DNA of 64,000 nt, from NCBI GenBank assembly GCA_950097015.1, contig CATNEN010000020.1:31025-95024 (forward strand). The letters are read 5' to 3'. The translations under genes and the position numbers were made by a program. Positions 24,301 through 64,000 of this stretch are shown here, one piece after another; the first letter of the stretch is position 1; each line of letters opens with the position of its first letter. Source of the DNA: Macrostomum hystrix (taxonomy: Eukaryota; Animalia; Platyhelminthes). Under the pieces are notes generated by a model. The model ran no database searches and was not told the DNA's origin. It worked only from the letters and a program-made list of their open reading frames with translations.

Positions 24301-27300
24301 GTCTCAGTAAATAATCTCATGCAGGATTGAGGTCCTGGTCTCACTAAAGAATCTCATGCAGGATTGAGTCCTGGTCTCAGTAAAGAATCTCATGCAGGAT
24401 TGAGTCCTGGTCTCAGTAAAGAATCTCATGCAGGATTGAGTCCTGGTCTCAGTAAAGAATCTCATGCAGGATTGAGTCCTGGTCTCAGTAAAGAATCTCA
24501 TGCAGGATTTGATTCCCTGGTCTCAGTAAAGAATCTGCATGCAGGATTGAGTCCTAGGTCTCAGTAAAGAATCTCATGCAGGATTGAGTCCTGGTCTCAG
24601 TAAAGAATCTCATGCAGGATTGAGTCCTGGTCTCAGTAAATAATCTCATGCAGGATTGAGTCCATGGTCTCCACTAAAGAATCTCATGCAGGATTGAGTC
24701 CTGGTCTCAGGTAAAGAATCTCATGCAGGATTGAGTCCTGGTCTCAGTAAATAATCTCATGCAGGATTGAGTCCTGGTCTCACTTAAAGAATCTCATGCA
24801 GGATGAGTCCTGGTCTCAAGTATAAAGAATCTCATGGCAGGATGAGTCCTGGTCTCAGTAAAGAATCTCATGGCAGGATTGAGTCCTGGTCTCAGTAAAG
24901 AATCTCATGCAGATTGAGTCCTGGTCTCAGTAAGAATTCTCATGCAGGATTGAGTCCTGGTCTCAGTAAAGAATCTCATGCAGGATTGAGTCCTGGTCTC
25001 AGTAAAGAATCTCATGCAGGATTGAGTCCTGGTCTCAGTAAAGAATCTCATGCAGGATTGAGTCCTGGTCTCAGTAAAGAATCTCATGCAGGATTGAGTC
25101 CTGGTCTCAGTAAAGAATCTCATGCAGGATTGAGTCCTGGTCTCACGGAAGATTCTCTCGGGGAGTTTATTCATAAGTATGTGAACAGTATCTTATGATA
25201 TTGGGCATAACGCTGAAGAATGAAATCAGAGAGTTAAAATGGTCTCTTGTTAGCCTAAAGTAGTAAGAAGTGCCTCTGCACTTGTTCGCAAGTATTAATA
25301 ATTGTATGTGTCAATCAATTTTAGCATTAAATTCCATAGCTAATTTAGTGAGAATTTAGCGAGATTGCTTCGAGTGCCACCTCTGTATTCATTAATCAGT
25401 TACCTACAGCTCTAGACTAATTACTTAATTTTCCTTTCCTTGTGTCTTGCCTAATCTAACTGTGCTTATTATTTTCTCGTCCCTTGCCCGGTTGCATTTT
25501 CTTGAATTTTGCTAGCTTGAACGGCTTGGATTTGAAATTTCAGTGTCTTTAATCCAAGCAGTTTTCCCGTTTTAAAGGTGTTGCCATTTGAATCCAGGTT
25601 TCAAAATTTCTCATTCGCATTGTTAATTTCCCGTCTGTGCATGTGGGGGGGGGAATCAAGCCAACCCAGTTCCTCTTATCGGATTAATATGTGTGATATC
25701 TGACACGAGTTCGTATTTGGGAAGGAAGAACCGTTGTAAGTCTATTTTGTTATTTTAGCATTTCAAATGATCAAATCATCTCAAGGGTGAATAAGCAGGG
25801 CAATGCGTGTTGCTTTAAAGAAGGGGCAAGCATCACTGGCAGAACGAAGTGAAGATAGGGCGGGTTTGTACCATAGACTAAACTTCAATGTGTGTCAATA
25901 TGGTAAGGAGAATGTATGAAAACATTAAGACGTTGATTGTAGCCGTGTCTGATGTGTATGAGGCTTTGGTAAGCCTTGCTTAATCTCTGATCCTCTATTA
26001 ATCTATCCCGACCATGCTGGCTGAGGCTCAGGCATGATAACGATTCGGTTTAACTCTCTGTCACTTTGTGGACTGTGAGCAAATTTATGCCCACTCATTT
26101 CAGCTGATCTCCCACCTCCAATCTCCCATGCTGGAGATTAGTCGCGAACATGGTTGTTGGACTGAAACGGATCCCATTAAGGTGGTAGCTGGCTATTTAT
26201 ATCAGATAGCCAGTTCCGGTCTCATTGTGTACACTGAGTGACCGGGTGGACTGAGCAGCGACCGGAAATTCAAGCTGATCCCCTACCACTCAGCTTAAAC
26301 AGAGAGAATGAGGAAGATGTCTCTACTTGTCCTAACTGCTCCCATGGTCCACTATCCTAAAAGCAATATCATTTGCTGATGCTTCCATAAAAAATAAATA
26401 ACATTGACAGCCTCTTCACGCTGGAAACGCTTGCTTTAGGTTAGTCCATCGCACGAGCCTTAGCTCAACGCCATCTGCTAAAGTCTTGACTACTCAGACG
26501 ATTATCCTGAGAAACTACGTTAAGCGAGACGCAAACAGAGTGTGAATCTCGCCCTTAGCTTTTCTCATCGTCTGGAAGTGTACAGTCTTGCCTTGGAGCT
26601 TTCGTTTACATTTAGCGCAGATGGCTTAAACTCCTGGTCATAATATCTCCGCTTAGACTTTTCAGATGTGCCTTTAAAAAATCTTGTAAAGGCTTTTTAA
26701 TCCTTGAAATCAATTAAACTACTCCTACAGCACAGTGGATGTCTACATGCTGAATGTCTTTTGGATTCGTGAAGTCACGAGACAGTTAAAAAAGTTGATG
26801 CAGCTAAAATGCAGATTTTCAATAAAAAACGTCACCTAACCAGTTCAGTAAGATTTGCAGCCAGTGGCACAGCCGCAGCTATTGCTCGGCACTTCTAAGG
26901 CCTGTTTACAGCTGTTGAGTCCGTAAATTAGGGAGGCCGCCACACCCACCTAGTTTCTTCTACCCCAACTGATGCTGGTAGCTATTTTACAGCTGGGTGA
27001 ATTAAAGTACTAGGAAATGTAATTTCCCCAACAACACAACTTTCTTCATCTGGGCCGAGGGCTTCCAGGCGCGTGTTTAGCACGCGTGAGGTGAAGCTTA
27101 GCAAGCTCTGCCAGCTCTGCAAGATTAGCAGAGTTCTGCTTCCAGAATTAGCTGACTGCTACCTGAAAATTCTGCTGCGCCAGACTCCTGTACAGAGAAA
27201 GCTAGGATCCAATATACACGTACATACAGAATGCACACTGGGCACTAACATCAATTTGTGCGCACTGCGCGCTGCACAAACTGGCTCAATTACGTCACTC

Positions 27301-49076: not shown

Positions 49077-52000
49077 CTACTGCACGCGGCATCCGCTGGA
49101 GTTCTCCACGCGGCTCATGCGCCACTGACTGACCAAACGGGCGATTTTCATCCCAGCCGCCATCGACAGGTTGGTGGCCTCGTCACCGCCACCGGCGGCT
49201 CGGTTTCGATGCACGAGAGCCACGCTTCGGCTGGGCAGTGCGGCCAAGTGCTCGGCGAAGTCCGGCTCGGCCGGATCCGCGATCGCCAGCATGGTCAGCG
49301 AGCCGTCGACTCCGCCGCAGACAACGCCGCGACCGTCGACAGATCCGACGAGAGCTTTGACCTCAGCGTGCACCTTGTAGTCGGCTAGCAGAGCCCCGTC
49401 GGACATTCGAATCAGGCGGACCGTTTTTCGACCACTGTGAAAGTGCACAATGTACTTGTCGTTGTTGGTGAACACTGTCAGGCTGGGAAAAACGCCGTCG
49501 GCGGCCAAGCGGCGCAGGATCCACTTGGATTGCTGCGGCTTGCGCAGATCGAGCAGCTTCACGCCGCCAATCAGCGGGGAGAAGAGACCGTAAGCGCCAT
49601 CAGAGGTGACAGCGCCCTGCCACTCCGGAACCGAGCGCACCACCGCTTTCTTTTTAACGTCCCAGATCTGTCCGCAGTCCTCGGTGATGAGGCCGAGCCA
49701 GGCCGGTTTGCCGGGAAGCGGGACCAGCTGGCGCACCGGCTTGGCCTCGTTGCTGAGGCGCGGCTTCGTTTTGACAAGAAAAGCACCTGATACGGCGTCG
49801 TAAAACGAGACGATGAAGTCGTCGTCTTTTGCTGAGCATGGAACGAGAAGCTGATGGCTGTCTAAAGCAAAGACCGGCGCAACAAACTCGGCGCCGTGGT
49901 AGTACTCAAACTCGAAAAGCAGCTCACCGGCTGGCATCGAATAACAACTCAATGTTGTGCTCTTGGAAGTTCTCTTCTCGGCGCTGACAGCGACAAGCTT
50001 GCTGCCGTCCTTAGACAACTCCAGAGCCTCCACGGGGCCCCCGTCGCGGCTGTGCGTTGCCACGCACTCCGGCAGGCGCCAAAAGACAAGCCGGCGGCTG
50101 TCCCCTGATACCGCTGTTGAAGCATCGTGCGAGATGATCGTCTTGAAGATTATAGCATTGCCACTGGCTGAGAAGGTTTTCAACAGATGACCTCGCTGGA
50201 GGTCCCATAGGCCCAGGTAGGTTCGGGCAGCTGTCACGGCCGTTTTTCCATCCTTAGCCAGCGAAATCGAGTCGATTGGCTTCTCCATGTGGTGAATGTT
50301 GTACACGCGCTCCATTATATTGTTGAAGTTCCACACCTTGATGGTCTTGTCCATGGCAGAGGAGACGATGCGGTGCAGTGGCGCCGAACTTGTCAGGGCA
50401 ATGACCCGACCGAAGTGAGCGTCCAGCTTCTTCATCAAGGTGCCCGTCTTGCACGAGTAAGCCAACACAAGGTGACGCACTGCGGCTATCATAAACTCGT
50501 TGCCGCGGCTCAGCACGATCAGGTTCTGCATTGGGTTTCTGTTGGGAATGTTCTGACAGCCCTTGGGCAGCTGGGCGCGAGCGCATGGCCGATTCGCCGC
50601 AGCCAAGTGCCACAGTTTGAACTCGTTGGAGCAGGCAGCCACAAGAACATTCTCATCGTCGCTAAGCGTCAGACTGCAGAACTCGTCTGTATTGTCGACA
50701 TAGGTTTCTTCTCGAACGCCGAAGACAATGTCCTCAACGTTGCCTTCTGGGGTTTTCAGATAGCGATGAATAGCAAAGTCAAACGAAGAATCCTCCGAGC
50801 AACGCTCTGCCACAAAAAACTGGCGCCGGCCCATCGCCAGACCCGTGTGGTACTTTAGACTGCGAGAGACGTCTCGGCAAAAGTACAGCTTGAAATCTCT
50901 TGTCGTGGACGAGTCGCTGCCGTCGCCGTTGGAGCCTCGCGTATCGTCGGTGACAATGGACGTGCAGAAATAAAACTCGCCATCAGCCGCGCCACCGCCG
51001 CCGCCACCGCTGCCGCCGCCGCCGCCGCTGCCGCCGCCGCCGCTGCCGCCGCCGCCGCCGCTGCACTCTCCGCGGTAGCCAAAGTGAATGATCTCCTCTC
51101 GACAGCCGGCTTCTTCCGCTGCGAGCTGACTGGAGCGCGTCAGCTCCGCCGCATGGCTGAATTCAGACCAGCCGTGCGCAGTGAAGGCCAGGCAGGCCGT
51201 TGAAGTGACCAGAACCCCACGGATCTCTGCCTCCTTGGGCATGTCGTGAAACCGATGCTCGCCAGAGACCAGGTCGGTGAACACCAACTGGTTGTTGCTT
51301 GTGTAGCTGACTGCCCGCCTGTCTTCTGCATCGAAAGCCATGCCTCGAGTGATGCCTTGCAGACCGTGCATCGGAATGCTGCGAAATATCTCGCCAGTCT
51401 GCAGGTCCCAAATGATGAACTGGTTGGACACTGACACCAGGTACTTGCTGTCGCTGGTCACCTGCATTCCGTAGCAGGCGAACTGATGACCCTCAAGCGA
51501 GTACTCCAACGGGCCGCCTGGCGTGTACAGGTAGTGGTGACCGGGAACCAAAGCGCAGTGAGTCGGTCCCTGACGGTCGCATTCTTGAATGAGCCGTCGC
51601 ACCTTTTCAAAGTTGGCGTAGTACGGAAGCAGTCGCCCACTCACCTGCGGCCCCAGCATGTTCGGACTCTTGGTGATTATGCTAGCCGAGAGACGAAGGC
51701 ACTCGCTGAGAATCCGGGCGTCCCTGTCGTTCGTCTTGGCGATCATGCTGTCCAGATCTGACAGCAGCGCCTGAAGAGGAAACGCGCTCAGCTTGGCGTG
51801 CAGGAACTGGTAGTTGAACAGGCACTCGCTCGCCAGTTCTGCCATGCGGCCCGACTTCAGCAGCTGGAAGGGCAGCTCGCTCAGCTTGCGCAGGTTGTAT
51901 CGAGCTGTGCGCGCCGCACCGTCGTTTAGACGCAGCGGCTGCGGCGGCACCATTCGATCGCTCTCCGAGTTGACGTCCTTGAGGCCGAATCGCTGCTTCT

Positions 52001-55000
52001 GCAGCTCACTGTAGGCAAATGGCTTGGCCACCCCGGCCCACTTTCCCAGGTAATAATCGGCCAGGTTTGAGTGAATGCTCGACTTGAAGTTCAAGTTCTT
52101 GAAGTATCGCTTCTCGCACACCTGGAAGAACTGTCTATGGTACCAGTAGACAACGCTAACTCCGTCGGCCTCCTTCTCGACCAAGAAGCCAGGCAGTTCG
52201 CTACGGATGCGGGTCCACAGCAGCGGCGGGATGCGTCTGCTAGGTGGCAGGTGGTACTGATAGACATCGTTCAGGACCTTCTCATCCAGTGATAGATTGT
52301 CCTCGAGCTCGGACTCAGAGATGCCACTTTTTGAGGCTGTGATGTAGGAGAATGCGTGCGTCACCAGAATAAGACCATGCTGGTTCTCAATGCGCTGAAA
52401 CAGTTGCATGATGCTGTCGAAGATGTTGAAAGATAGAACATTCTTCTCGGGCGAATCGTAAGATCGCCACCGAGTGATCTCATCGAACACGATTTTGATA
52501 AACAGAGGCGAGGTGCACTTGGAGATGGCCTTATCCACCACCTGCCACTGCGACTCCGTGATGCTGCGATTTGCCGCTCGCAGCCGCACCCGAAGCACCT
52601 CCAGCGACAGGGGCTTGCCGAGGTCATCGAGCTTCAGAAAGTTATCAGCGGTGGACACCTTCAGCTTGAGAGTCTTCAATAGGCCATAAAAATTCGGCAG
52701 CGAAGACACGACGACCTTGACATTCGGCGGAAGCGCGTCCGGCAGCCACAATAGCAGATGAGCATTGTTCTCTGGTGATAACTCTTCTAGGGAGTCCAAG
52801 AACACCAGCAGTGGCCTCTGCGGTGTGGCGAAGGTCATGAGCTGCTTGAAGTGCTGGATGAGCCGCGGCAGCTCCTCAGGGATGTCCGCGGTGCGCTGGT
52901 CATAGAGGAAACTCAACTGGCGGCACAAACTGGTGAGCAGGACGCCCAAGGACGAACTCTGAGGAGACGTACCCAATAGTCGGAAAACAATGCAGGGCTC
53001 CAACCGCGGCTGCTGCTCATCCAGCCAGTTCCGCACCTGGAAGGTGATTAAGAACGCGAAGCCAAGTTCAAAATTTGTAGATTTTCTGAAAAGGCCAACT
53101 GGCTTCCCTAATTTCGACTCACCTCCCCGCATGACTTGGCCATCAGCGAAGTCTTTCCACAGCCGGGTTTGCCATAGAGTACAAAGATTCGCCGGTTTTC
53201 TACACTCCGACAATAGTCGCGCACCTTCAGCAAGTCGGCCTCGCGACCTTGAAATATCTGCAAAGCCCGCACGCCAACAGTTTGAGCGACGCAACACTAC
53301 TTATAGTAGTGATTAAAGTACTGACTAAGGTCGATAACATCGTTCTCACCTCGCATAACTTTGCGCACACAAGTAGGTGCTGCAAAATTTCCGACAGCGT
53401 GACGTCCTTGGAAACCAGGCGGTTTCTACGGGCGCCCCGGTCAATGAGGTGCACAAGGCGGGTGTAGAACGTGTCGCAAAATTCGTCTATGTACTCTGAA
53501 AGTTTAATCGGTCTTAAGTAAGGTAAGTAAAGTAAAGTTTAATCATTTACAGGACATGCTTTAGTCCTGTAAATGTAATTGTACTTGCAAAATAAAAGTA
53601 AATGTAATTGTAAAATATTTCAATATTTCAACATTAACCGACATGATGGCCAGAATAAACACAAGTGTATCCATCTATTCCTAGAAAACATTGCTTATTA
53701 TTCACATTGCTATACTGTGTACACAGGACATTGTGCGGGGGTCGACATGGCAAAAAGCTTTGGTGATTCAAATTGCGTTGTCAGTAATGCAGGAAAGATA
53801 TCGACAAGCGATGCCTGTCACAGGGTCGTGACTTGGACTTTTGTGTGACTTTTTTGACGATTTAAGAAATTTATGGACCAAGAATTGGGTAAAATCAGAT
53901 TTTTGAAAATTGCTGTATTCAAGTTTACAACTATAAAGAAACGATGCACATAGTAGGACAAAGTGTCTTCCCTGGCGCAGCGCGCTGATTGGTCCGTGAG
54001 GGAGGTGGGTTGGGAGGGGTTGGTGTGCAGGGGTGGAGAGGTTTGAGGGTCTGAGTTTAGGTTTGGTGGGGTAAGAAGGGATTTCTATTTAACAACAATT
54101 TCTTATACTTATGACTTTATATATTCTACGTTAATGTTAAAGATTACAAGGTCCTATTACCTGAAATCCTGCTTCAGTAAAATTAGGGGAGGGGGTTAAC
54201 CAGTCACAAATTGAGGTTTTTCGCTAATTTTTGGGCCCTTTAAACTAGGCATGGCCCAGCTTTTCCAACTATAGAAATTTGAAATCACTTCTGTGCGTAT
54301 CCAGGTGGATTCCAGACGGATCGACCCACGGCTGCGAGTAGCGAATGATCGAGGACGCCCGAAGGCGCTCTGGTATCTTCCTGTCGCGCAGGTCGTCCAT
54401 CAGCTGCTGACCCTCCCGGTCGACCTCCGAGCCAGACATGTCGATGAAGTTGCGAGCCACGCGCCAGTTCTCCAGGCTGATGCCATTCAGCTGGCGCAGG
54501 AAGGCCAGTGTGTGGCGGTGGTTGTCCGGCGCCGTCAGGATGCCGTGAATGTTCTCGCGCTCCGTCACTGCAGTCAGAGTGTAGGTGAGTTCAGGTGAGT
54601 GCAGATGAGTGCACGTTGAGTGCACGTTGTGCAGATGAGTGTTGGTAAGTGTAGTTGAGTGCAGGTGAGTGCAGTTGAGTTCAGGTGAGTGCAGGTGAGT
54701 GCTGGCTAAGTGGACGTTGTGCAGGTGAGTGCAGGTGAGTTTAAGTGAGTGCAGGTGAGTGCAGGTGAGTGCAGGTGAGTGCAGGTGAGTGCAGGTGAGT
54801 GCAGGTGAGTTCAGGTGAGTGCAGGTGAGTTTAGGTTAGTGCAGGGGAGTCCAGGAGAGTACAGGTGAGTTCAGGTGAGTTCAGGTGAGTGCAGAGGAGT
54901 TCAACAGAATGCAGGTAAGTGCAGGTGAGTTCAGGTGAGTGCAGGTAAGTTTAGGTTAGTGCAGGGGAGTCCAGGAGAGTACAGGTGAGTTCAGGTGAGT

Positions 55001-58000
55001 TCAGGTGAGTGCAGAGGAGTTCAACAGAATGCAGGTAAGTGCAGGTGAGTTCAGGTGAGTGCAGGTAAGTTTAGGTTAGTGCAGGGGAGTCCAGGAGAGT
55101 ACAGGTGAGTTCAGGTGAGTTTAAGTGAGCGCAGGTGAGTTTAAGTGAGTGCAGGTGAGTGCAGGTGAGTGCAGGTGAGTGTAGGTGAGTTCAGCTGAGT
55201 GCAGGGGAGTCCAGGAGAGTACAGGTGAGTTCAGGTGAGTGCAGGTGAGTTCAGGTGAGTGCAGGTGAGTTTAGGTTAGTGCAGGGGAGTCCAGGAGAGT
55301 ACAGGTGAGTTCAGGTGAGTTCAGGTGAGTGCAGGGGAGCTGAGGTGAGTGCAGGTGAGTGCAGGTGAGCTCAGGTGAGTGCAGGGGAGTTCAGCAGAAT
55401 GCAGGTGAGTGCAGGTGAGCTCAGGTGAGTGCAGGTGAGCTCAGGTGAGTGCAGGTGAGTGCAGGTGAGCGCAGCTGCTCCTAAGGTATGAGCTATTCTG
55501 CTGCTATGTGGCAGACTCCGACCTTGGCAAAGGCCTTACTCACCCGACATGAAATAGTTGTGCCTTTGATCTGCGTCAATTTTCTCCTGGTCAAAGAGTG
55601 CATCGGCAGCCCGGCGAAAGATGCCCTGCATTTTGGTCATTGTGGACCACCACTCATTCTGGTGTGCCTCCATCATCTTTTGCATTCCCTGTGAGCAGGT
55701 AACAGGTTTGAAAACAGGTATCGTAACAACTTTTTTTCGATAAATGTCGGACATTACAATAGAAAAATGATAGCATCTAGGTACGAGTTAAACAGGTATT
55801 ATTATATCATTACGAAGCACTCAGACATTTGTGGAGAAAAATATGGAGTCTACTCATCGTCTGAGATAGACTGGCACAGTTATACCAATGTCAGCAGAGC
55901 TGTTAACTCGCTTGCCCGTCACACCTAATGTCCTTCTAATGTCCTTCTAATGTCCTTCTAATGTCCTTCTAATGTCCTGAGTTTGACTTCGCAACCCTGG
56001 AGAAAGTGCTTGGGGCTTGTTGTGAATTCCATGCTCTTGAAACGATACAACCTCCAAGGCACAGTGAAAAATTCAGGGCAGATGTACATTCGTGTGTCAG
56101 TGTCGTGTAGATCGCCTCTTATTGGCTGCGGGTCGACTTGGACAAAATAATGTGCCCTCTTCCCTTCTGCAAATTATTATTCATGTATTGTGTGCTTGTT
56201 ATTCGGCTGTCACTTAGTAGAGTAGGTAGCGGGGTTGTAGCCTAGTGGTTAGAGCGTCGGACTGACGACTTGAAGGTCGGGGGTTCGATTCCCGACACTT
56301 CACTGGAACTATTTGTGTCTTTAAGCAATGCACTTAACTCTGCAACGCTGCAGTTTCATCCAGCTGTATCTGGGGTAATTGAGGGTGGCGTCCCCCCAGT
56401 CCATGGACTGAACAGCCGTACGCAGTCTTCAGCTGCGCCGTGCAATAGCTGCGGCTGCGCTGTCGGCTGCACATTTATCGACCCGGTTGTGGTAAGTGTA
56501 ATCAATTATTATAATTAACAATTAGACAGTAGATACGACATACGACATTAGACATTTTTGTAAAATGCTACCAAGAACAAAACTAATACTTTTTGAGCTA
56601 AAAACATGGACTCTAATTCAGTATAAAATGCGCTTTCATTCAATTTCGCACTCATAGACTGTCAGTAACTATGAGAGCATCTAGAAAATATAAAACTAAC
56701 TGCAGAAATTTGCTTTCGCAGATAACTACGCATGATGATTACGAACCTTTTCCTGAAATCAATGGATGATTTAAACAAATTATTCAGAAAAGTTTCAGCT
56801 AGTGTAGATGCAGAAGCAAAAGTGGAGGCTCCACTCACCTTGTTGTTGAAGTGAATCAAAATCGACGATATTGGCTGCAGCACCTGTACAGGCGGCACAA
56901 TGTTCGCGTCCAGCTTGTACCACCGCTCCAGGCAGGCTGCGTCCTCCGCCGAGCTCTGGCGTACAGCCTCCAGGATGAGATCGAATTCCTGGGCGTCAAT
57001 CAGCGTAGGAAACGGCCGGTAGCCGTACTTCTGACCGAGCAGAACCACGAAGTTCGGACCCACGCTAACGCGCTGGCAGGTTTTGATCTCCCGCAGGCAC
57101 AGCTCTGTGGTCATGTGGTCATCTGTGGCCTCATCGCGAACACCCCAGCGCATGTCAACGACCTGGCGATTCAGATTGGACGCAGTTTTCGGAACGCAAA
57201 CACGATAATAATAATTGCAGAAGGGCTGCGGGCAACGGCACATCATTTGGTGACACTAGAACCCCAGCCAGCGAGGAGGCAATTCTGCCCATTTCGCTGA
57301 CTCCTGAGCACACACGCACACAGATACTGTATGCAGGCACACACTCACACAGGTGTGTACATCTTTCCTGACTCTCTTATCGTCAGGCAGTGTACACTCT
57401 CACTGTGCCTTTGAGGTTGGCCCTCAAGGGCCTAAATTTCGCGACCAGCTTTAAGCCTTCTCTCCGAGGCTGCGCCCCAAGTAAATGTGGCCTCGCCGCG
57501 GAATCAAGCTCAGGGACCTTGGTGCGAGAGGCAAACGTGTTATAACGCTTTGCAACTCAACGCTCAACAAAATACCGAACAAATAGGAGAGAAAAATTGT
57601 CACCTGAAACTCGAGTCCGTGCTTCTCGCGACAGTACTCCTTGATCTTCGGATAGATTGTCTCCATCAGAGAGTTACGCTCAACTCCGGTGTCTAGAGTT
57701 CAGAGAAAGTTTAACAAAACAGCTCGAATTGATTTCGAATGAAGATTCTGTGATAAACATTCAAAATATTTGAGTACTACTCAAGTTGGTGTGAACCTGT
57801 GAAGGTGGAGCTGGTGAATATGCGCACGATCTTGCTGGGCATCGCTGGCAAATCCTCCAGAGACCCGCCGAACACCGAGTCGACCGTCGGGTGCCTGCCC
57901 CGGCTAAGCGGACCCGTCAGCAGCTCCAGCTCCGGCAGGTCGTCATCTTCGTCTTCGGCGGCCAAAAACTCCTCAGCGGCCTCTAAATCTTCTTCCTCGC

Positions 58001-58591
58001 CGAGGTCTTCACCATCGTCTATCGGCATCTCGACGTCACCGTCGTCTGAGTCAAGAGTTGCCGCACCAGTTGCTGCGATAGGCGTTGATGTCTCAGCTGT
58101 TTTGTCACCGGCGTCGTCAGCAGCAGTCTCGTCGAAGGCTGCGGTTTCGGCCCCTTCGAAAGGCTCAGCTTGTTCCTGACTCTGCGGATCTTGCTGATCC
58201 TGTTGAAGCCAGTTTTGCGGAAGCTGCTGCAGCTGCTGAGGCAGCTGATGATGCTGCGACTGCTGATGATGCTGCGACTGCTGAAGCAACTGTTTGAGTA
58301 GCTGTAGCTGCTGCTGTTGCTGCTGCTGCTGCTGAGGTTGCTGATTTTGCTGCGACTGCTGAAGCAATTCCTGTATTAGCTGCCGCTGCTCAGGTTGCTG
58401 TAGCTCCTGTGAAATGCTTGACTGCTGAAGCAGCTGTTGTAGAATTTGTTGCTGCTGTTCCTGTTCTGGTATCGGATCAAGTGGCTGGTGTAGCTCGGTA
58501 TGGAGTTGTTGCTGATTCCTAAGCGTCTGTTGCACCCGTTGCGGTTGCTGCAGACTTTGCTGCTTTTGAACTGGCGGCTGCAACCCTAAAA

Positions 58592-58631
<40 letters not shown>

Positions 58632-58954
58632 ATCTAAGTTCAAGGGCTGATTTTGTTGAACAAGCTGCTGCAAGAGCTGCTGCTGCGATGAGTTGTGCTC
58701 AAGTTGCTGTGGTCGCAATTTGAGAAGCTGCAGTAGCTTTTGCTGCTGTGCACTTTGCGGTGCCAGCTGAAGCAGCTCTTGAAACGATTGAGGCTGTGAC
58801 AGCATTTGCTCTTCGACAGTAGGATTGCCTGTCGCAGCATCTCGCGGTGGGTCATTTCTGCGATCTCCCAGATGAGTCTCTATACTTTGCTGCTGCTGCT
58901 GCGTTGGAGGCAGCACAGGAAATTGACCGCGTCTCAAGTTCATTTCAGTCTGAC

Positions 58955-59000
<46 letters not shown>

Positions 59001-62000
59001 AAGCTGTTGCAGACGCGGAGGCATTCTCATTGGCAGCTTGACCTCCGGCAGTGATCCAAAGCTGAACTGCTGCTGATGATTCTGGAGCTGCCCCTGTTGA
59101 TGCTCGAGCCTTTGCTGCTGCTGCTGCTGCTGCAGGTTTTGCAGGTACTGCGGCTGCCTTGGCGGCTGTTTGGACTCTGAAAGTGCACCAAATTCGACGC
59201 GTTTCAGCGTCTGCTCGCCGGGTGGCTCAGCGATGGACTCCAACTGGTGGCCAGCGAACTCTTGCGGCTTGCGGCCTCGCCTGCACCGACCGGCCTCGCT
59301 GCGCCTCGATGCATTGCGCCCCGGGCCGGGCCCCGGATACAGACGGCCCAGCGAGAACTCCTCAGCGGCCTGGCTGGGCGTCATGCCGCTCAGCGTCTTG
59401 GAAAAGCTCGGCTGCGCCGAGGGAATCGCGCCGGACTGAGCGGCTGGCAGCTCGCCGGTGTCGCCAAGGTGAGCCAGCCGGATGTTGACCACCTGCGGCC
59501 GCTCCGGCCGATTGTCACGCGATCGATGCCTCGATCGTTTCGCCCTGAGATCCGCAGCGACGCCGCCGTCGGCTGCTTCTAAGCTCGTCGTCGGCAAACT
59601 GCCCGGCTTCAACGACTGCGACAGCTCCTTGGACAGTCGAAACTCGAGCTCCTGACCACCGGATAGCAGGATCATCACCTCGGGAGGCTGCGACCCCTGA
59701 TTGCCAGATTCGTCGGCGTGCGAGCCGACTGGCCCTGACACGGCCTGCAGACTGCTCTTCTTCAGGGTCACTGCCGACAGATCAAAGAGAATCAGCATGA
59801 GATTCATGAGATGTGAGACTGTTGTGATCTGAGTACAACCAGGTCTGATTCATGAGTTATGAAATTTAGGATGATGCCGACACCTGAGGCCATCTTAAAG
59901 TACTTGCTAATCAGATTCCATTATCTCGCCGTCTCACCTGGAGGCGGCGTACCGCTGATTGACACCTTCCAGAGGCTCTTGGTCTGCGGCCGGGGTCGCG
60001 GCCCCAGCTCCATTAGGCGTCTGGAGAAATAATTGTTGACAACTTTTTGTTTTCATGATTTTGTTTTTAGAATAAACTCACGAATGGAATTTCATTCTAG
60101 GAGTAAAGCTATAGTTTAGATAGAGCTTGTGATGTACTTTTAAATGAGCGTCTAGAGATTGACGTTAATTTGGCGATTGAAATGTACTTTAAAGGCGACG
60201 ACACATAAGTACTTTGCTGTGACATGTGACATCTACACGCGACCGATGAATTTTTTAGGAAAACAAAAAAAACTTTTCGAAATCCTTGAGATTGAAAAAT
60301 TCATTAGATTGATAAATCCATGAGACTGATAAATCAATGAGTCTGAGATTAATAAATCAATGAGATTGATAAATCAATGAGTGTGAGATTGATCAATCCA
60401 TGAGACTGATTAATCCATGAGTCTGATAAATCAATGAGATTGATAAATACAAGAGACTGATAAATCAATGAGACTGATAAATCAATGAGTTTGATAAATA
60501 CAAGAGATTGATACATACAAGAGATTGATAAATCAATGAGACTGATAAATCCAAGAGATTGATAAATCCACGAGATAGATAAATCAATGAGATTGATGAA
60601 TCCATGAGACTGTTAAATCCATGAGACTGATGAATCCATGAGTCTGATAAATCAATGAGATTGATAAATACAAGAGACTGATAAATCAATGAGACTGATA
60701 AATCAATGAGACTGATAAATCAATGAGATTGATAAATACAAGAGACTGATAAATCAATGGGTTTGATAAATACAAGAGATTGATAAATTCATGAGTCTGA
60801 TAAACACAAGGGATTGATAGATCCATAAAATTTATAAATCAATGAGATTGATAAATCCATGGGACTGATAAATCAATGAGATTGATAAATACAAAGAGAT
60901 TGATGAATCCATGAGACTGATAAATTCATGAGACTGATGAATCCATGAGACTGATAAATCCATGAGACTGTTAAATCCATGAGACTGTTAAATCCATGAG
61001 ATTTCGGAAATCTATGACATTGGGGAAACGCGGGAGCAGTTGAATATTGCGGCAATCTCAGTAATTAATATGCATGCGAGGCGAATAAAGCAAATAGATC
61101 ATATCAGAAGAGTAACTAATTTAGCCAATAGTTGTAAATCAGAACAGAGGAAGCCGTATTAGTATAAGTACATTTTATGACAACTAACAAAGCACAGTAG
61201 CAACAATTTTTAGTTTATTAACTGTAGAAAGTTCACGGAGGTATTTCAAGCACCCACTGTCCGATTCAACAACCTCCAGAGTCACAAAACATCGGCATCG
61301 CCGAGATATTCAACGATTCTCGTCTGGCAAGAACCACAAATATGGGGCATATTTCAATATGTCATTGTTAGTAATTTTGTATTTAAATAGTTAATTGTTG
61401 TATTTTTGGGCAGTGGGTATTTGAAATACCCCCCTGGTGTTTTACTGTCAAGTGATAGCTAATTCGAACTACGAGATAAGCGAATATTGGGTCAATGGAT
61501 TCTACTTATTTGCAGTGCGAAGTACCTGTTTAGTAACTGGCTGAAATGTGTGAGTATTTTGTGGCCAGCAAGTTAGAAACAATTGTTTAGTAAAGTTCAG
61601 AAAATCGTTTGCTCAAAAAATGCTGAAAACCCACTTACCTTGAAATGCTGCGTCCCTTATACACTGAAAAATGGAAGAGGTAAACACTTTAATGTGCGAA
61701 TTTTCTCATGCAACTAAGACAGTAGTATTGTATCATAGAACACTCTTGTCTAACACTGAACACTCTTGTCTAACACTGAACACTCTTGTCTAACACTGAA
61801 CACTCTTGTCTAATACTGAACACTCTTGTCTAACACTGAAGACTCTTGTCTAACAATGAACACTCTTGTCTAACACTGAACACTCTTGTCTAACACTGAA
61901 CACTCTTGTCTAACACTGAACACTCTTGTCTAATACTGAACAATCTTGTCTAACACTGAAGACTCTTGTCTAACAATGAACACTCTTGTCTAACACTGAA

Positions 62001-63618
62001 CATTCTTGTCTAACACTGAACACTCTTGTCTAACACTGAACACTCTTGTCTAACACTGAAAATACTTGTCTAACACTGAACACTCTTGTCTAATACTGAA
62101 CAATCTTGTCTAACACTGAAGACTCTTGTCTAACACTGAACACTCTTGTCTAACACTGAACACTCTTGTCTAACACTGAACACTCTTGTCTAACAATGAA
62201 CACTCTTGTCTAACACTGAACACTCTTGTCTAACACCGAACACTCTTGTCTAACACTGAACACTCTTGTCTAACACTGAACAATCTTGTCTAACACTGAA
62301 CACTCTTGTCTAACACTGAACACTCTTGTCTAACACTGAACACTCTTGTCTAACACTGAACACTCTTGTCTAACACTGAACACTCTTGTCTAACACTGAA
62401 CACTCTCGTCTAACACTGAACACTCTTGTCTAACAATGAACACTCTTGTCTAACACTGAACACTCTTGTCTAACACTGAACACTCTTGTCTAACACTGAA
62501 CACTCTTGTCTAACACTGAACACTCTTGTCTAACAATGAACACTCTTGTCTAACAATGATCACTCTTGTCTAACACTGAACACTCTTGTCTAACACTGAA
62601 CACTCTTGTCTAACACTGAACAGTCTTGTCTAACACTGAACACTCTTGTCTAACAATGAACACTCTTGTCTAACACTGAACACTCTTGTCTAACACCGAA
62701 CACTCTTGTCTAACACTGAACACTCTTGTCTAACAATGAACACTCTTGTCTAACAATGAACACTCTTGTCTAACACTGAACACTCTTGTCTAACACTGAA
62801 CACTCTCGTCTAACACTGAACACTCTCGTCTAACACTGAACACTCTTGTCTAACAATGAACACTCTTGTCTAACACTGAACACTCTTGTCTAACACTGAA
62901 AATACTTGTCTGATAGTGAACACTCTTGTCTAACACTGAACACTCTTGTCTAACACTGAACACTCTTGTCTTCTTGTCTTCTAGAACCGTTGTCAAACTG
63001 TTTTTGAAATCCGCAGCACTTTACAATAGGATCCACTCTCAATGGTTGTGGCCAATTTTTGCTTGCCATTATTTTCTCAACTGCAGCCCTAACATTTGCA
63101 TTTCCCACAATGCCACCAGAGCAGAGGAACATTGCAGTGACAGCTGAGGGGTGGAGACCGGGGAACAAGAATGGCGAGGAACTTGGGAACAAATGTTTGA
63201 AGGGGCGCACTGATCTCAGCTCTGAGTATAGTTCTCGAAATGCAATTTAATATCTGCTTCAGAACAGAACAATTTTTATGTCAGAAAAAAGTGCTAACAC
63301 TATCCAGAATAATCATTTGACGCTTGAAACTTGCTAACTGTCTGTCTTGTTTTCACGCGACCCAAAATTTATGGAATTTATGTGTAATATTATCTGTTAG
63401 ACAAGGTTGTTCATGTGTTAGAAAAAGTTGTTAATGTGTTAAAAAAGGCTGTTCATGCGTTAGACAAAGTTGGTCATGCGTTAGACAAAGTTGGTCATGC
63501 GTTAGACAAAGTTGCTCATGTGTTAGACAAGCAGATTTGTTTATTAAGCATTTGACACCTGTCACTTACCGTCAGGGTGCTTAACATAAATTTGCACAAC
63601 TAAGTCACCGCGCCACAT
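49077..63618 (-). CDS. NACHT- and WD40-repeat protein (NWD1/NWD2-like STAND ATPase) with putative N-terminal ubiquitin-like domain and polyQ linker, ~2454 aa
   Basis: Phase-consistent exons (minus): 63570-63618, 62988-63143, 61639-61663, 59938-60020, 57797-59770, 57604-57692, 56839-57162, 55544-55688, 54289-54567, 53350-53495, 53123-53257, 49077-53036 = 7365 nt. Motifs VRIFTSSTFTD and VDMRWGVRDE (DUF4062-like N-domain), Walker A GKPGCGKT, Walker B LLVFLDSLEE, WD repeats (LEGH, SSAMDKTIKVWN). The first three exons are less certain (~0.7). Confidence 0.88.
54585..55472. repeat. 10-bp minisatellite (CAGGTGAGT[G/T]) with ~120-bp higher-order units, filling an NWD intron
   Basis: Direct reading; higher-order unit repeated at ~54811, 54931 and 55051. 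Confidence 0.95.
55995..56100 (+). mobile_element. Degenerate SINE family A fragment, preceded by an 11-bp repeat (CTAATGTCCTT x~4-5, 55927-55978)
   Basis: GCTTGGGGCTTGTTGTG...AACCTCCAAGGCACAGTGA...CAGGGCAGATGTACA matches family A. Confidence 0.55.
56230..56515 (+). mobile_element. tRNA-derived SINE, family B (full length)
   Basis: GGGGTTGTAGCCTAGTGGTTAGAGCG...GGTTCGATTCCC head, CORE-like centre, 3' GTGCAATAGCTGCGGCTGCGCTGTCGGCTGCAC, TTATTAT tail. Confidence 0.85.
57205..57548 (-). mobile_element. tRNA-derived SINE, family A (copy 2), occupying most of an NWD intron
   Basis: Aligns by eye with 600-918 and 63804-64000; ends in a (TAT)n tail ~40 nt before the acceptor at 57163. Confidence 0.8.
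60305..61003. repeat. Degenerate ~17-bp minisatellite (AATC[A/C]ATGAGA[C/T]TGATA) in an NWD intron
   Basis: Direct reading; ~40 copies of variable length. Confidence 0.9.
61234..61438. mobile_element. Short MITE of the palindromic-TIR family
   Basis: CACGGAGGTATTTCAAGCACCCAC vs reverse complement of right end ACCAGGGGGTATTTCAAATACCCAC. Confidence 0.65.
61739..62970. repeat. 20-bp minisatellite (AACACTCTTGTCTAACACTG), ~61 copies, in NWD intron 2
   Basis: Direct reading; ends ~17 nt from the exon-2 donor. Confidence 0.97.
63396..63531. repeat. ~6 copies of a 21-bp unit (TGTTAGACAAAGTTGTTCATG), an inverted relative of the 20-bp array, in NWD intron 1
   Basis: Reverse complement of the first unit, CATGAACAACCTTGTCTAACA, vs array unit (C/A)TGAACACTCTTGTCTAACA. 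Confidence 0.85.
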
Positions 63619-63803
63619 TTCACACTGCAGCTAAAATTTATTCCACCATAAATAATTTATAGCGTAGTTAGTCAACGCAATATAATACTCAATTTTTGCC
63701 TTTTAGCTCGTACTTTCAAGAATAGAACAGTCTATGAATGGTCAAACCTGTTACACGGAAGGGTTCCGTTAATTTTAGAACAGATTGTAACCTGTTAGAC
63801 GTA

Positions 63804-64000
63804 GGGGGTCGGTGGCAGAGCGGTTAACGCGTTTGCCTCTCGCACCAAGGTCCCTGAGCTCGATTCCGCGGCGAGGCCACATTCATTTGGGGCGCAGCCG
63901 CGGAGAGAAGGCTTGGGGGCTTGTCGTTCAATTTACGCCCTTGAGGGCCAACCTCCAAGGCACAGTGAGAGTGTACACTGCCTGACGATGAGAAAGTCAG
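63804..64000 (+). mobile_element. tRNA-derived SINE, family A (copy 3, truncated by the window end)
   Basis: GGGGGTCGGTGGCAGAGCGG (A box) ... GAGCTCGATTCC (B-box-like), with body matching copies 1 and 2; ~185 bp upstream of the predicted NWD ATG, divergently oriented. Confidence 0.85.

Follow-up and report, generated by a model that had tools for sequence, protein, structure and literature searches.

Within the window, the whole 64,000-nucleotide stretch of Macrostomum hystrix DNA analyzed here, the minus strand appears to carry the 5′ end of an ordinary, intact NWD2-like STAND gene, an orthologue or close paralogue of M. lignano PAA84392.1, whose reading frame extends above ATG 60013 and encodes no ubiquitin-like domain; taken as a whole, we regard this explanation as probable. 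An earlier sequence-only reading had proposed that hidden upstream exons give this protein an N-terminal ubiquitin-like domain, which, if true, would be an unusual architecture for an animal NLR-like STAND protein. The outcome is modest, a small annotation correction and no surprising biology: to judge from a conserved 25-nt coding micro-exon, the deposited models of the three M. lignano copies probably begin at an internal methionine. The correction is of use for re-annotating Macrostomum genomes and for studies of the N-terminal region of the protein. Features of the locus are collected in Table 1.

Table 1. Features of the NWD2-like locus and its upstream region (positions in the window; a slash marks a splice junction)
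Feature	Position	Strand	Remarks
Exon 1, candidate first coding exon, 49 nt	63570..63618	-	ATG 63618; donor ACG/GTAAGT, phase 1
Exon 2, 156 nt (3n)	62988..63143	-	Probably intronic, at best an unsupported cassette
Exon 3, conserved 25-nt coding micro-exon	61639..61663	-	tttcag/TGTATAAGGGACGCAGCATTTCAAG/gtaagt; encodes (V)YKGRSIS(R)
Exon 4, 83 nt	59938..60020	-	Encodes RLMELGPRPRPQTKSLWKVSISGTPPP; contains ATG 60013
Exon 5, Q-rich low-complexity N-terminal region ending in DUF4062 start (SKIVRIFTSSTFT)	57797..59770	-	Donor ACAG/GTTCAC, non-consensus
Gene remainder, 7 more exons	49080..57693	-	Exons mapped by tblastn with P0001
20-nt minisatellite, 62 copies	61738..62971		Intron between exons 2 and 3; Tandem Repeats Finder
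17-nt minisatellite, 42 copies	60280..61003		Intron between exons 3 and 4; Tandem Repeats Finder
21-nt minisatellite, 6.5 copies	63395..63530		Just downstream of exon 1 donor; Tandem Repeats Finder
tRNA-like SINE, very high copy	63803..64000 (to window end)		185 nt upstream of exon 1 ATG

The identity of the gene as a Q-rich DUF4062-NACHT-WD40 protein, already recognized in the sequence-only reading, is borne out by Pfam scans and by homology to M. lignano. The tblastn exon map of the M. lignano orthologue P0001 on the window is complete, and the exons downstream of exon 5 encode DUF4062, a NACHT P-loop of the NPHP3_N type, an NWD1-type winged helix, WD40 propellers, and the NWD2 C-terminal propeller. 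At 49080-53300, the last of these (PF23586, Beta-prop_NWD2_C) scores 407 bits against a cutoff of 33, and WD40 (PF00400) scores 44.9 bits. HTH_NWD1 reaches 50.8 bits in a window ORF, and the P-loop exon (53260-53120) aligns to residues 1061-1107 of P0001, in which NPHP3_N scores 34.2 bits (cutoff 24.8). DUF4062 precedes NACHT in the orthologue, with 32.7 bits against a cutoff of 24.7; the single DUF4062 exon of the window stays below the cutoff, at 20.3 bits, since three exons share the domain. The frame of exon 5 is open from the exon 4 junction, and its alignment with P0001 consists of conserved islands amid variable linkers.

The four small minus-strand pieces upstream (49, 156, 25, and 83 nt) join in frame without a stop, as had been claimed; they reproduce the 104-aa peptide quoted in that claim, and the frame continues into the next exon at 59770. 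The two GTAAGT donors that had been pointed out are indeed there, at exons 1 and 3 (both G/GTAAGT); the donors of exons 4 and 2 are GTGAGA and GTTCTA, respectively, the latter non-consensus. Conservation was judged against three Macrostomum lignano copies (loci L001-L003), each with 10 kb upstream of the gene. Comparison with this related flatworm upheld the proposal of hidden upstream exons in part: translation in the claimed frame extends over exon 3 and the first 7 nt of exon 4, and exons 3 and 4 are conserved at the M. lignano loci, whereas exons 1 and 2 are absent there.

Exon 3 and both of its splice sites are found at L001 8746-8770 and also in L002 and L003. All six of its differences from M. 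lignano are synonymous and fall at third positions, and identity in the flanking introns is random (14/40 and 11/40). Exon 4 matches L001 9991-10078 with 85% DNA identity and 27 of 28 residues; its two differences before ATG 60013 are both synonymous in frame. Over the 32 nt upstream of that ATG, 8/8 differences are thus third-position synonymous and 0/21 first or second positions have changed (P about 2e-4), and the peptide of exons 3 and 4 is identical to that of M. lignano in 35 of 36 residues. Because the splice sites are conserved and the upstream differences are all synonymous, exons 3 and 4 are, on this comparative evidence, real coding sequence. The same 8/8 pattern shows, at the level of DNA comparison, that the open reading frame starts upstream of the methionine annotated in M. 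lignano, that is, above ATG 60013, and passes through the micro-exon. The strongly conserved peptide VYKGRSISRRLMELGPRPRPQTKSLWKVSISGT is therefore internal to the protein, and it is under strong purifying selection.

How the frame begins is a separate question. Exon 3 was rejected as a contiguous first exon: in both species, reading upstream from it meets a stop and no ATG, and a spliced upstream exon bearing an ATG is therefore required. Initiation on exon 3 or 4 at the 3′ ATG of the spliced leader (SL) was rejected as well, since inspection of the SL sequence (PMC8629364) places this ATG out of frame with the conserved frame. Within the window, exon 1 is the sole candidate that combines an ATG with a strong phase-1 donor in the 2.3 kb above exon 3, a combination with a chance frequency of about 0.3 per kb. 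Its codon log-odds are neutral, its codon composition is intermediate, and it is single copy in the genomic DNA run. Because the length of exon 2 is a multiple of three, exon 1 can also be spliced straight to exon 3 in frame. A counterpart of exon 1 was not found at any of the three M. lignano loci (10 kb upstream each), and an end-anchored comparison of all phase-1 donor peptides of the window with 7 kb of M. lignano upstream sequence yielded no conserved upstream exon. Upstream identity among the three M. lignano copies is 84-98%, too high for exons to stand out by conservation. N-terminal exons may evolve fast or be lineage-specific, and absence from M. lignano is no proof against them. Exon 1 (ATG 63618), the only good candidate inside the window, is a plausible start exon to which we give slightly less than an even chance, and it may join exon 3 directly.

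The upstream exons lie among repeats. The GTCTAAC core of the 21-nt minisatellite is inverted with respect to the 20-nt array. Contig word depth in the SINE is 1.3e5 to 4.3e6 versus about 77 in its flanks, and another copy of the SINE is located at approximately 57390-57545. Above exon 1, the window extends for another 380 nt. Over 62972-64000, run X1 gave flat ~77x genomic DNA coverage and no splice joints, and the sister-species runs X2 and X3, at a likeness of at least 80%, aligned to minisatellite and SINE only, in a comparison with no positive control and hence of little weight. A read-run search for 57800-63700 listed no RNA run, and one for the open frame at 49080-53300 listed three runs, guessed to be DNA. 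With residues 1-200 of P0001 as the query no transcript-derived fragments were found, and with residues 1-60 its own cluster was the only match.

Together with exon 1, exon 2 would supply the beta1-beta2-alpha1 core of the putative ubiquitin-like domain; it is very probably intron sequence with a chance open frame. Its GC3 is 0.39, versus 0.66-0.78 in known exons, and its codon log-odds are negative, as in introns. In L001-L003 it has no match by blastn, tblastn, tblastx, or end-anchored peptide comparison, and its frame has no credible homologue among 1.84 billion proteins; the lone database match (E 8e-4) was rejected, as it lies mostly upstream of the exon and involves a repetitive protein. 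Real families typically score higher in Atlas recognition than its 1634, and an Atlas search with its frame returned nothing above 0.57. Origin from a transposon fragment was also rejected, the exon being single copy at ~77x with no second copy in the window.

Three other explanations were weighed against this reading of the locus. On the one hand, the M. lignano proteins P0001, P0121, and P0122 all begin MELGPRP, at the counterpart of ATG 60013, and this alone would favor a downstream start, with exon 3 absent from the mRNA or part of the 5′ UTR, or with the spliced leader trans-spliced onto exon 4. Some 20-30% of Macrostomum genes undergo SL trans-splicing at acceptors of the form [T/C]TNCAG (PMC8629364, PMC10468722), a motif that the exon 4 acceptor, CTCCAG, matches. 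On the other hand, the synonymous differences and unchanged first and second positions upstream of ATG 60013 lie in the frame of the main ORF with no intervening stop, which is the mark of translated sequence and not of a UTR, and a truncated model would be accounted for if a transcript-to-genome aligner had lost the 25-nt micro-exon, as happens easily. We consider a start at ATG 60013 improbable. An SL-trimmed isoform could coexist with a longer one. Somewhat less improbable, although still unlikely, is a transcript that contains all four exons, with exon 2 either constitutive or a cassette, and that gains from them a lineage-specific orphan N-terminal peptide without a ubiquitin-like fold. 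An upstream ATG-bearing exon is required in any case, the two species diverge rapidly in the remaining N-terminal region, and exon 2 has a good acceptor (pyrimidine tract and CAG, the strongest in its intron) and sits in an open frame of 98 codons. Its weak donor (AACG/GTTCTA) does not exclude it and counts for less because exon 5 of the same gene must use a similar G/GTTCAC. Against the use of exon 2 stand its lack of conservation and homologues and its intron-like composition; moreover, frame-preserving cassettes are expected by chance (32 open AG..GT cassettes in the needed phase in the same intron versus 23 and 24 in the other phases), and the frame is kept equally well without it.

The remaining explanation is the one originally proposed: four constitutive exons whose first ~100 residues form an integrated ubiquitin-like beta-grasp domain before polyQ-DUF4062-NACHT-WD40. 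It draws on in-frame joining with usable splice sites, on short collinear matches in a soft-gap alignment (QIYVK, NV.A, KQ, GR..S), and on the reality and high conservation of exons 3 and 4, from which the last strands would come. The likeness to ubiquitin and other beta-grasp families (PF00240, PF11976, and relatives) is limited to length and a few short collinear identities (QIYVK/QIFVK, GR..S); unlike ubiquitin, the peptide has no C-terminal GG, profile match, above-chance alignment, or conserved core, and it has proline-rich segments where strands are expected. When the conceptual peptide of 104 aa was run through hmmscan with Pfam-A (E <= 10), the only match was a sub-threshold MelC1 (19 bits, cutoff 27); no family of the beta-grasp type, whether ubiquitin, Rad60-SLD, or another, came up. 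The resemblance seen by eye dissolves on alignment: the Smith-Waterman score against ubiquitin, whose sequence was verified against PDB, is 22, versus 22.3 +/- 4.0 in 3000 shuffles (p 0.52, or 0.18 when gaps are soft). Nor is the proposed domain conserved as a unit, as its exon 3-4 part is nearly identical in M. lignano and its exon 1-2 part is missing from all three loci; a single folded domain would not be half-conserved. As weak evidence from single-sequence structure predictions, exon 2 alone gave three low-confidence helices and no strand (AlphaFold2, pLDDT 52), and residues 1-175 of M. lignano P0001 were predicted to be disordered (pLDDT 34); proline abounds in the part from exon 4 (GPRPRPQ, GTPPP). 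An integrated ubiquitin-like beta-grasp domain thus appears to be absent, and four constitutive exons encoding one are very hard to credit. Equally so is its last refuge, in which all four exons are spliced and the N-terminus is an extremely divergent, species-specific beta-grasp with its last strands from the micro-exon and exon 4.

Under the NWD2-like explanation that we favor, the start codon would lie in an upstream exon, with exon 1 as the candidate, spliced straight to exon 3. VYKGRSISRRLMELGPRPRPQTKSLWKVSISGT would be the first of several short conserved motifs in a variable region that is predicted to be disordered. In NWD/STAND proteins, propellers sense, the NACHT domain oligomerizes, and the N-terminal part serves as output. 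By analogy with these NTPases, the WD40 propellers of the present protein would presumably sense and its NACHT domain oligomerize, and DUF4062 together with the disordered N-terminal region may be its output or regulatory end.

The closest known system is that of M. lignano. PAA84392.1 (BOX15_Mlig005707g1, a hypothetical NACHT domain protein) and its copies PAA84265.1 and PAA72568.1 have the same architecture and exon structure, in which a Q-rich N-terminal stretch of some 720 residues precedes DUF4062, NACHT, winged helix, and WD40 propellers. PAA84392.1 shares 83% identity with the large terminal open frame, and the micro-exon occurs in all three M. lignano loci. However, the M. lignano gene models begin MELGPRP and omit the micro-exon, and nothing resembling exons 1 and 2 is found at the loci, where the best candidate for a first exon (L001 7343-7376, MALQFAAPYGH, donor ATG/GTAAGA) is unrelated in sequence. 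The exon 5 donor also differs, being G/GTGAGT in M. lignano and GTTCAC here. With animal NWD2 and NWD1 the protein shares DUF4062, a NACHT-type P-loop, an NWD1-type winged helix, WD40, and the NWD2 C-terminal propeller. Compared with named NWD2 proteins from molluscs, brachiopods, nemerteans, and arthropods, identity is 36-43% at about 90% query coverage and reaches 44-53% at about 42-48% coverage. A typical NWD2 has about 1650-1750 aa and starts near DUF4062, whereas the Macrostomum proteins carry about 720-770 additional N-terminal residues, Q-rich and apparently disordered.

Judging by comparison with Macrostomum lignano, exons 3 and 4 of the NWD2-like gene are real and coding. The sequence-only reading had joined four minus-strand pieces (exons 1 to 4) ahead of the Q-rich exon 5 and had taken their product for an N-terminal ubiquitin-like domain. 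The M. lignano protein PAA84392.1 and its two sister copies start with MELGPRPRPQTKSLWKVSISGTAPP, which is the peptide that exon 4 encodes from ATG 60013 onward. The exon 4 counterpart lies at 9991-10078 of the orthologous locus L001 (NIVC01000376.1; 85% identity), and 1.2 kb upstream of it (L001 8746-8770) lies an exon 3 counterpart of equal length, with a tttcag acceptor and a GTRAGT donor; exon 3 was also found in the other two M. lignano loci, L002 and L003. Between the two species, the 32 nt before ATG 60013 (all of exon 3 and the first 7 nt of exon 4) carry eight differences, all of them at third positions and all synonymous in the proposed frame: 8 of 11 third positions have changed, against 0 of 21 first and second positions (P about 2e-4). 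Identity in the 40-nt intron flanks is random (14/40 and 11/40). Because of this synonymous pattern and because there is no stop codon from exon 3 to ATG 60013, the stretch is taken as translated continuously with the main ORF and is neither a UTR nor a separate uORF. Just upstream of exon 3, contiguous reading meets a stop and no ATG in both species; thus, an additional spliced exon with a start codon is required. The proposal of hidden upstream exons therefore holds for exon 3 and the 5' end of exon 4 (over the whole exon 3-4 peptide, 35 of 36 residues are identical in M. lignano), but not for exons 1 and 2, which are unsupported and absent from the three M. lignano loci.

Exons and repeats of the locus and its surroundings (window positions)
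Feature	Position	Strand or location	Details
Exon 1	63618-63570	minus	donor G/GTAAGT
Exon 2	63143-62988	minus	156 nt, multiple of three; donor G/GTTCTA
Exon 3	61663-61639	minus	25-nt micro-exon; donor G/GTAAGT
Exon 4	60020-59938	minus	donor G/GTGAGA; contains ATG 60013
21-nt array	63395-63530	intron
20-nt array	61738-62971	intron	62 copies
17-nt array	60280-61003	intron	42 copies
tRNA-like SINE	63803-64000; about 57390-57545
Very long tandem arrays	about 3900-7350; 14070-14820; 16235-17580; 17626-25192

Trans-splicing of a spliced leader (SL) is common in Macrostomum (20-30% of genes, acceptor motif [T/C]TNCAG; PMC8629364; PMC10468722), and exons 3 and 4 both have acceptors that match this motif. 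However, at neither exon is the terminal ATG of the SL in phase with the conserved frame, and it cannot provide the start, so that an SL-supplied start codon was excluded. An SL-trimmed isoform beginning at MELGPRP may exist alongside the longer form.

Where, then, does the required start lie? On the minus strand (59700-64000 read), the four pieces join in frame as had been described, giving 313 nt with no stops and the same 104-residue peptide, and the open frame continues into the next exon through acceptor 59770; the two perfect GTAAGT donors are also present. The observation is correct as arithmetic, and the half of it that is relevant to the claim is no better than chance. Searches by blastn, short-word blastn, tblastn and tblastx, covering the 8.7 kb of L001 upstream of exon 3 and the three loci as a whole, found no counterpart of exons 1 and 2; none emerged either when the peptides preceding each phase-1 donor were compared between the two species with their ends anchored. 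Under the constraint seen on exons 3 and 4, a 51-residue exon would have been detected in M. lignano. Exon 1 is the sole ATG-to-strong-donor phase-1 candidate within the window's 2.3 kb of upstream sequence; the same rule gives two candidates in 7 kb of M. lignano, so that one in the window is about the chance expectation. The better of these two (L001 7343-7376) has good Kozak context and a GTAAGA donor, and its sequence is unrelated to exon 1. Codon log-odds in the proposed frame are neutral for exon 1, and we put its reality at slightly short of an even chance.

The use of exon 2 is unlikely. Its codon log-odds are negative, and its GC3 is 0.39, against 0.66-0.78 in exons 4 and 5 and the terminal large open frame. 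With the minisatellite set aside, 32 AG..GT cassettes in the intron are open and keep the frame in the needed phase, compared with 23 and 24 in the other two, and a good donor is present in none of them, so the in-frame property of exon 2 is not special; being a multiple of three in length, exon 2 is also dispensable, since exon 1 joins exon 3 directly in frame. Its donor cannot be dismissed by strength alone, because the real donor of exon 5 is G/GTTCAC. At that site (57795-57800), the non-consensus ACAG/GTTCAC is required for frame with the DUF4062 exon, and the M. lignano orthologue has a consensus G/GTGAGT. Among 1.84 billion representative proteins, the open frame of 98 codons that surrounds exon 2 had one match (E 8e-4), rejected as a homologue: its best stretch lies mainly upstream of the exon acceptor, and the matched protein is itself repetitive and has none but spurious Pfam matches. 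An Atlas search of the exon 2 frame gave a low recognition value, and none of its hits exceeded 0.57. Coverage of 62972-63800 in a DNA sequencing run is even at about 77x with no joints, which, for genomic DNA, confirms the assembly only.

The ubiquitin-like domain itself is wrong or unsupported. No ubiquitin-type or other beta-grasp family was found in the 104-residue peptide (hmmscan, Pfam-A, E <= 10), and its local alignment to ubiquitin, the sequence of which was confirmed against PDB, scored 22, against 22.3 +/- 4.0 for 3000 shuffles (p 0.52; p 0.18 with soft gaps imitating by-eye chaining). In the sister species, the exon 3-4 half of the supposed fold is conserved and the exon 1-2 half is absent, which is unlike the behaviour of a single small domain. 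The exon 4 part is proline-rich. Single-sequence models, which count weakly, were all-helical with low confidence for exon 2 alone (pLDDT 52) and reached pLDDT 34 for M. lignano residues 1-175. Over the first ~330 residues, the two species align as short conserved islands between variable Q-rich linkers (MELGPRP...VTLK, VMIL.S.GQELEFRL..ELSQSLKPG, SFSKTLS...EEFSLGR.YPG, QQQFSFG.LPE and NLRRG.FPVLPPT), a pattern typical of linear motifs set in a disordered region. Low complexity is not uniform in exon 5 (57797-59770): compared with PAA84392.1 residues 26-300, it has five or six short near-identical blocks, one in fuller form SFSKTLS.M.P.QA.EEFSLGR.YPG, which stand among linkers free to vary.

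Minisatellite DNA makes up a large share of the window. The two arrays flanking exon 2 have a common 7-nt core in opposite orientation (GTCTAAC and GTTAGAC, gene strand), and the corresponding M. lignano region has mutually inverted (TTAG)n and (CTAA)n microsatellites (L001 about 7440-7480 and 7975-8020); the two species may share a repeat-prone intron. Upstream of the candidate start exon, at a distance of 185 nt, lies one SINE copy; the other is in the intron following exon 5. Summed contig word depth of the SINE in the DNA run is 1.3e5 to 4.3e6, against about 77 in single-copy flanks, which makes it an extremely abundant family. On both strands, the very long arrays can be read as open frames hundreds of codons long, with one unit type extending over about 7.5 kb.

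In M. lignano, the deposited PAA84392.1, PAA84265.1 and PAA72568.1 begin MELGPRP. The micro-exon and the 7 nt preceding the ATG (L001 9994-10000) evolve as coding, likewise in L002 and L003, and the deposited start is probably an internal methionine. Loss of a 25-nt micro-exon in transcript-to-genome alignment would account for the shortened models. The 5' part of the Q-rich exon recurs as a 1.8-kb copy (L001 3-1796, 96% identical to L001 10176-12023) 10.2 kb upstream of the gene, owing either to partial tandem duplication or to an artefact in the assembly of the hidden polyploid M. lignano; the gene span in L002 is 10 kb longer than in L001.

The sole new point is that the micro-exon is conserved and coding and that the M. 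lignano models probably have a truncated start. The locus is otherwise an ordinary NWD2-family gene. Its terminal large open frame (49080-53300) shares 83% identity with PAA84392.1 (2414 aa), and remoter matches, at ~36-53% identity, come from many invertebrates and bear the name NWD2. Every PAA84392.1 exon was placed on the window, unbroken, by tblastn; exon DNA identity is 69-85%, and introns are unalignable, which points to a Macrostomum species distinct from the sequenced M. lignano or to a diverged copy. Pfam detects the NWD2 C-terminal propeller (407 bits), WD40 and an NWD1-type winged helix in the window, and DUF4062 and an NPHP3_N/NACHT P-loop in the orthologue. The protein carries a Macrostomum-specific disordered N-terminal extension, which the deposited M. 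lignano proteins already have.
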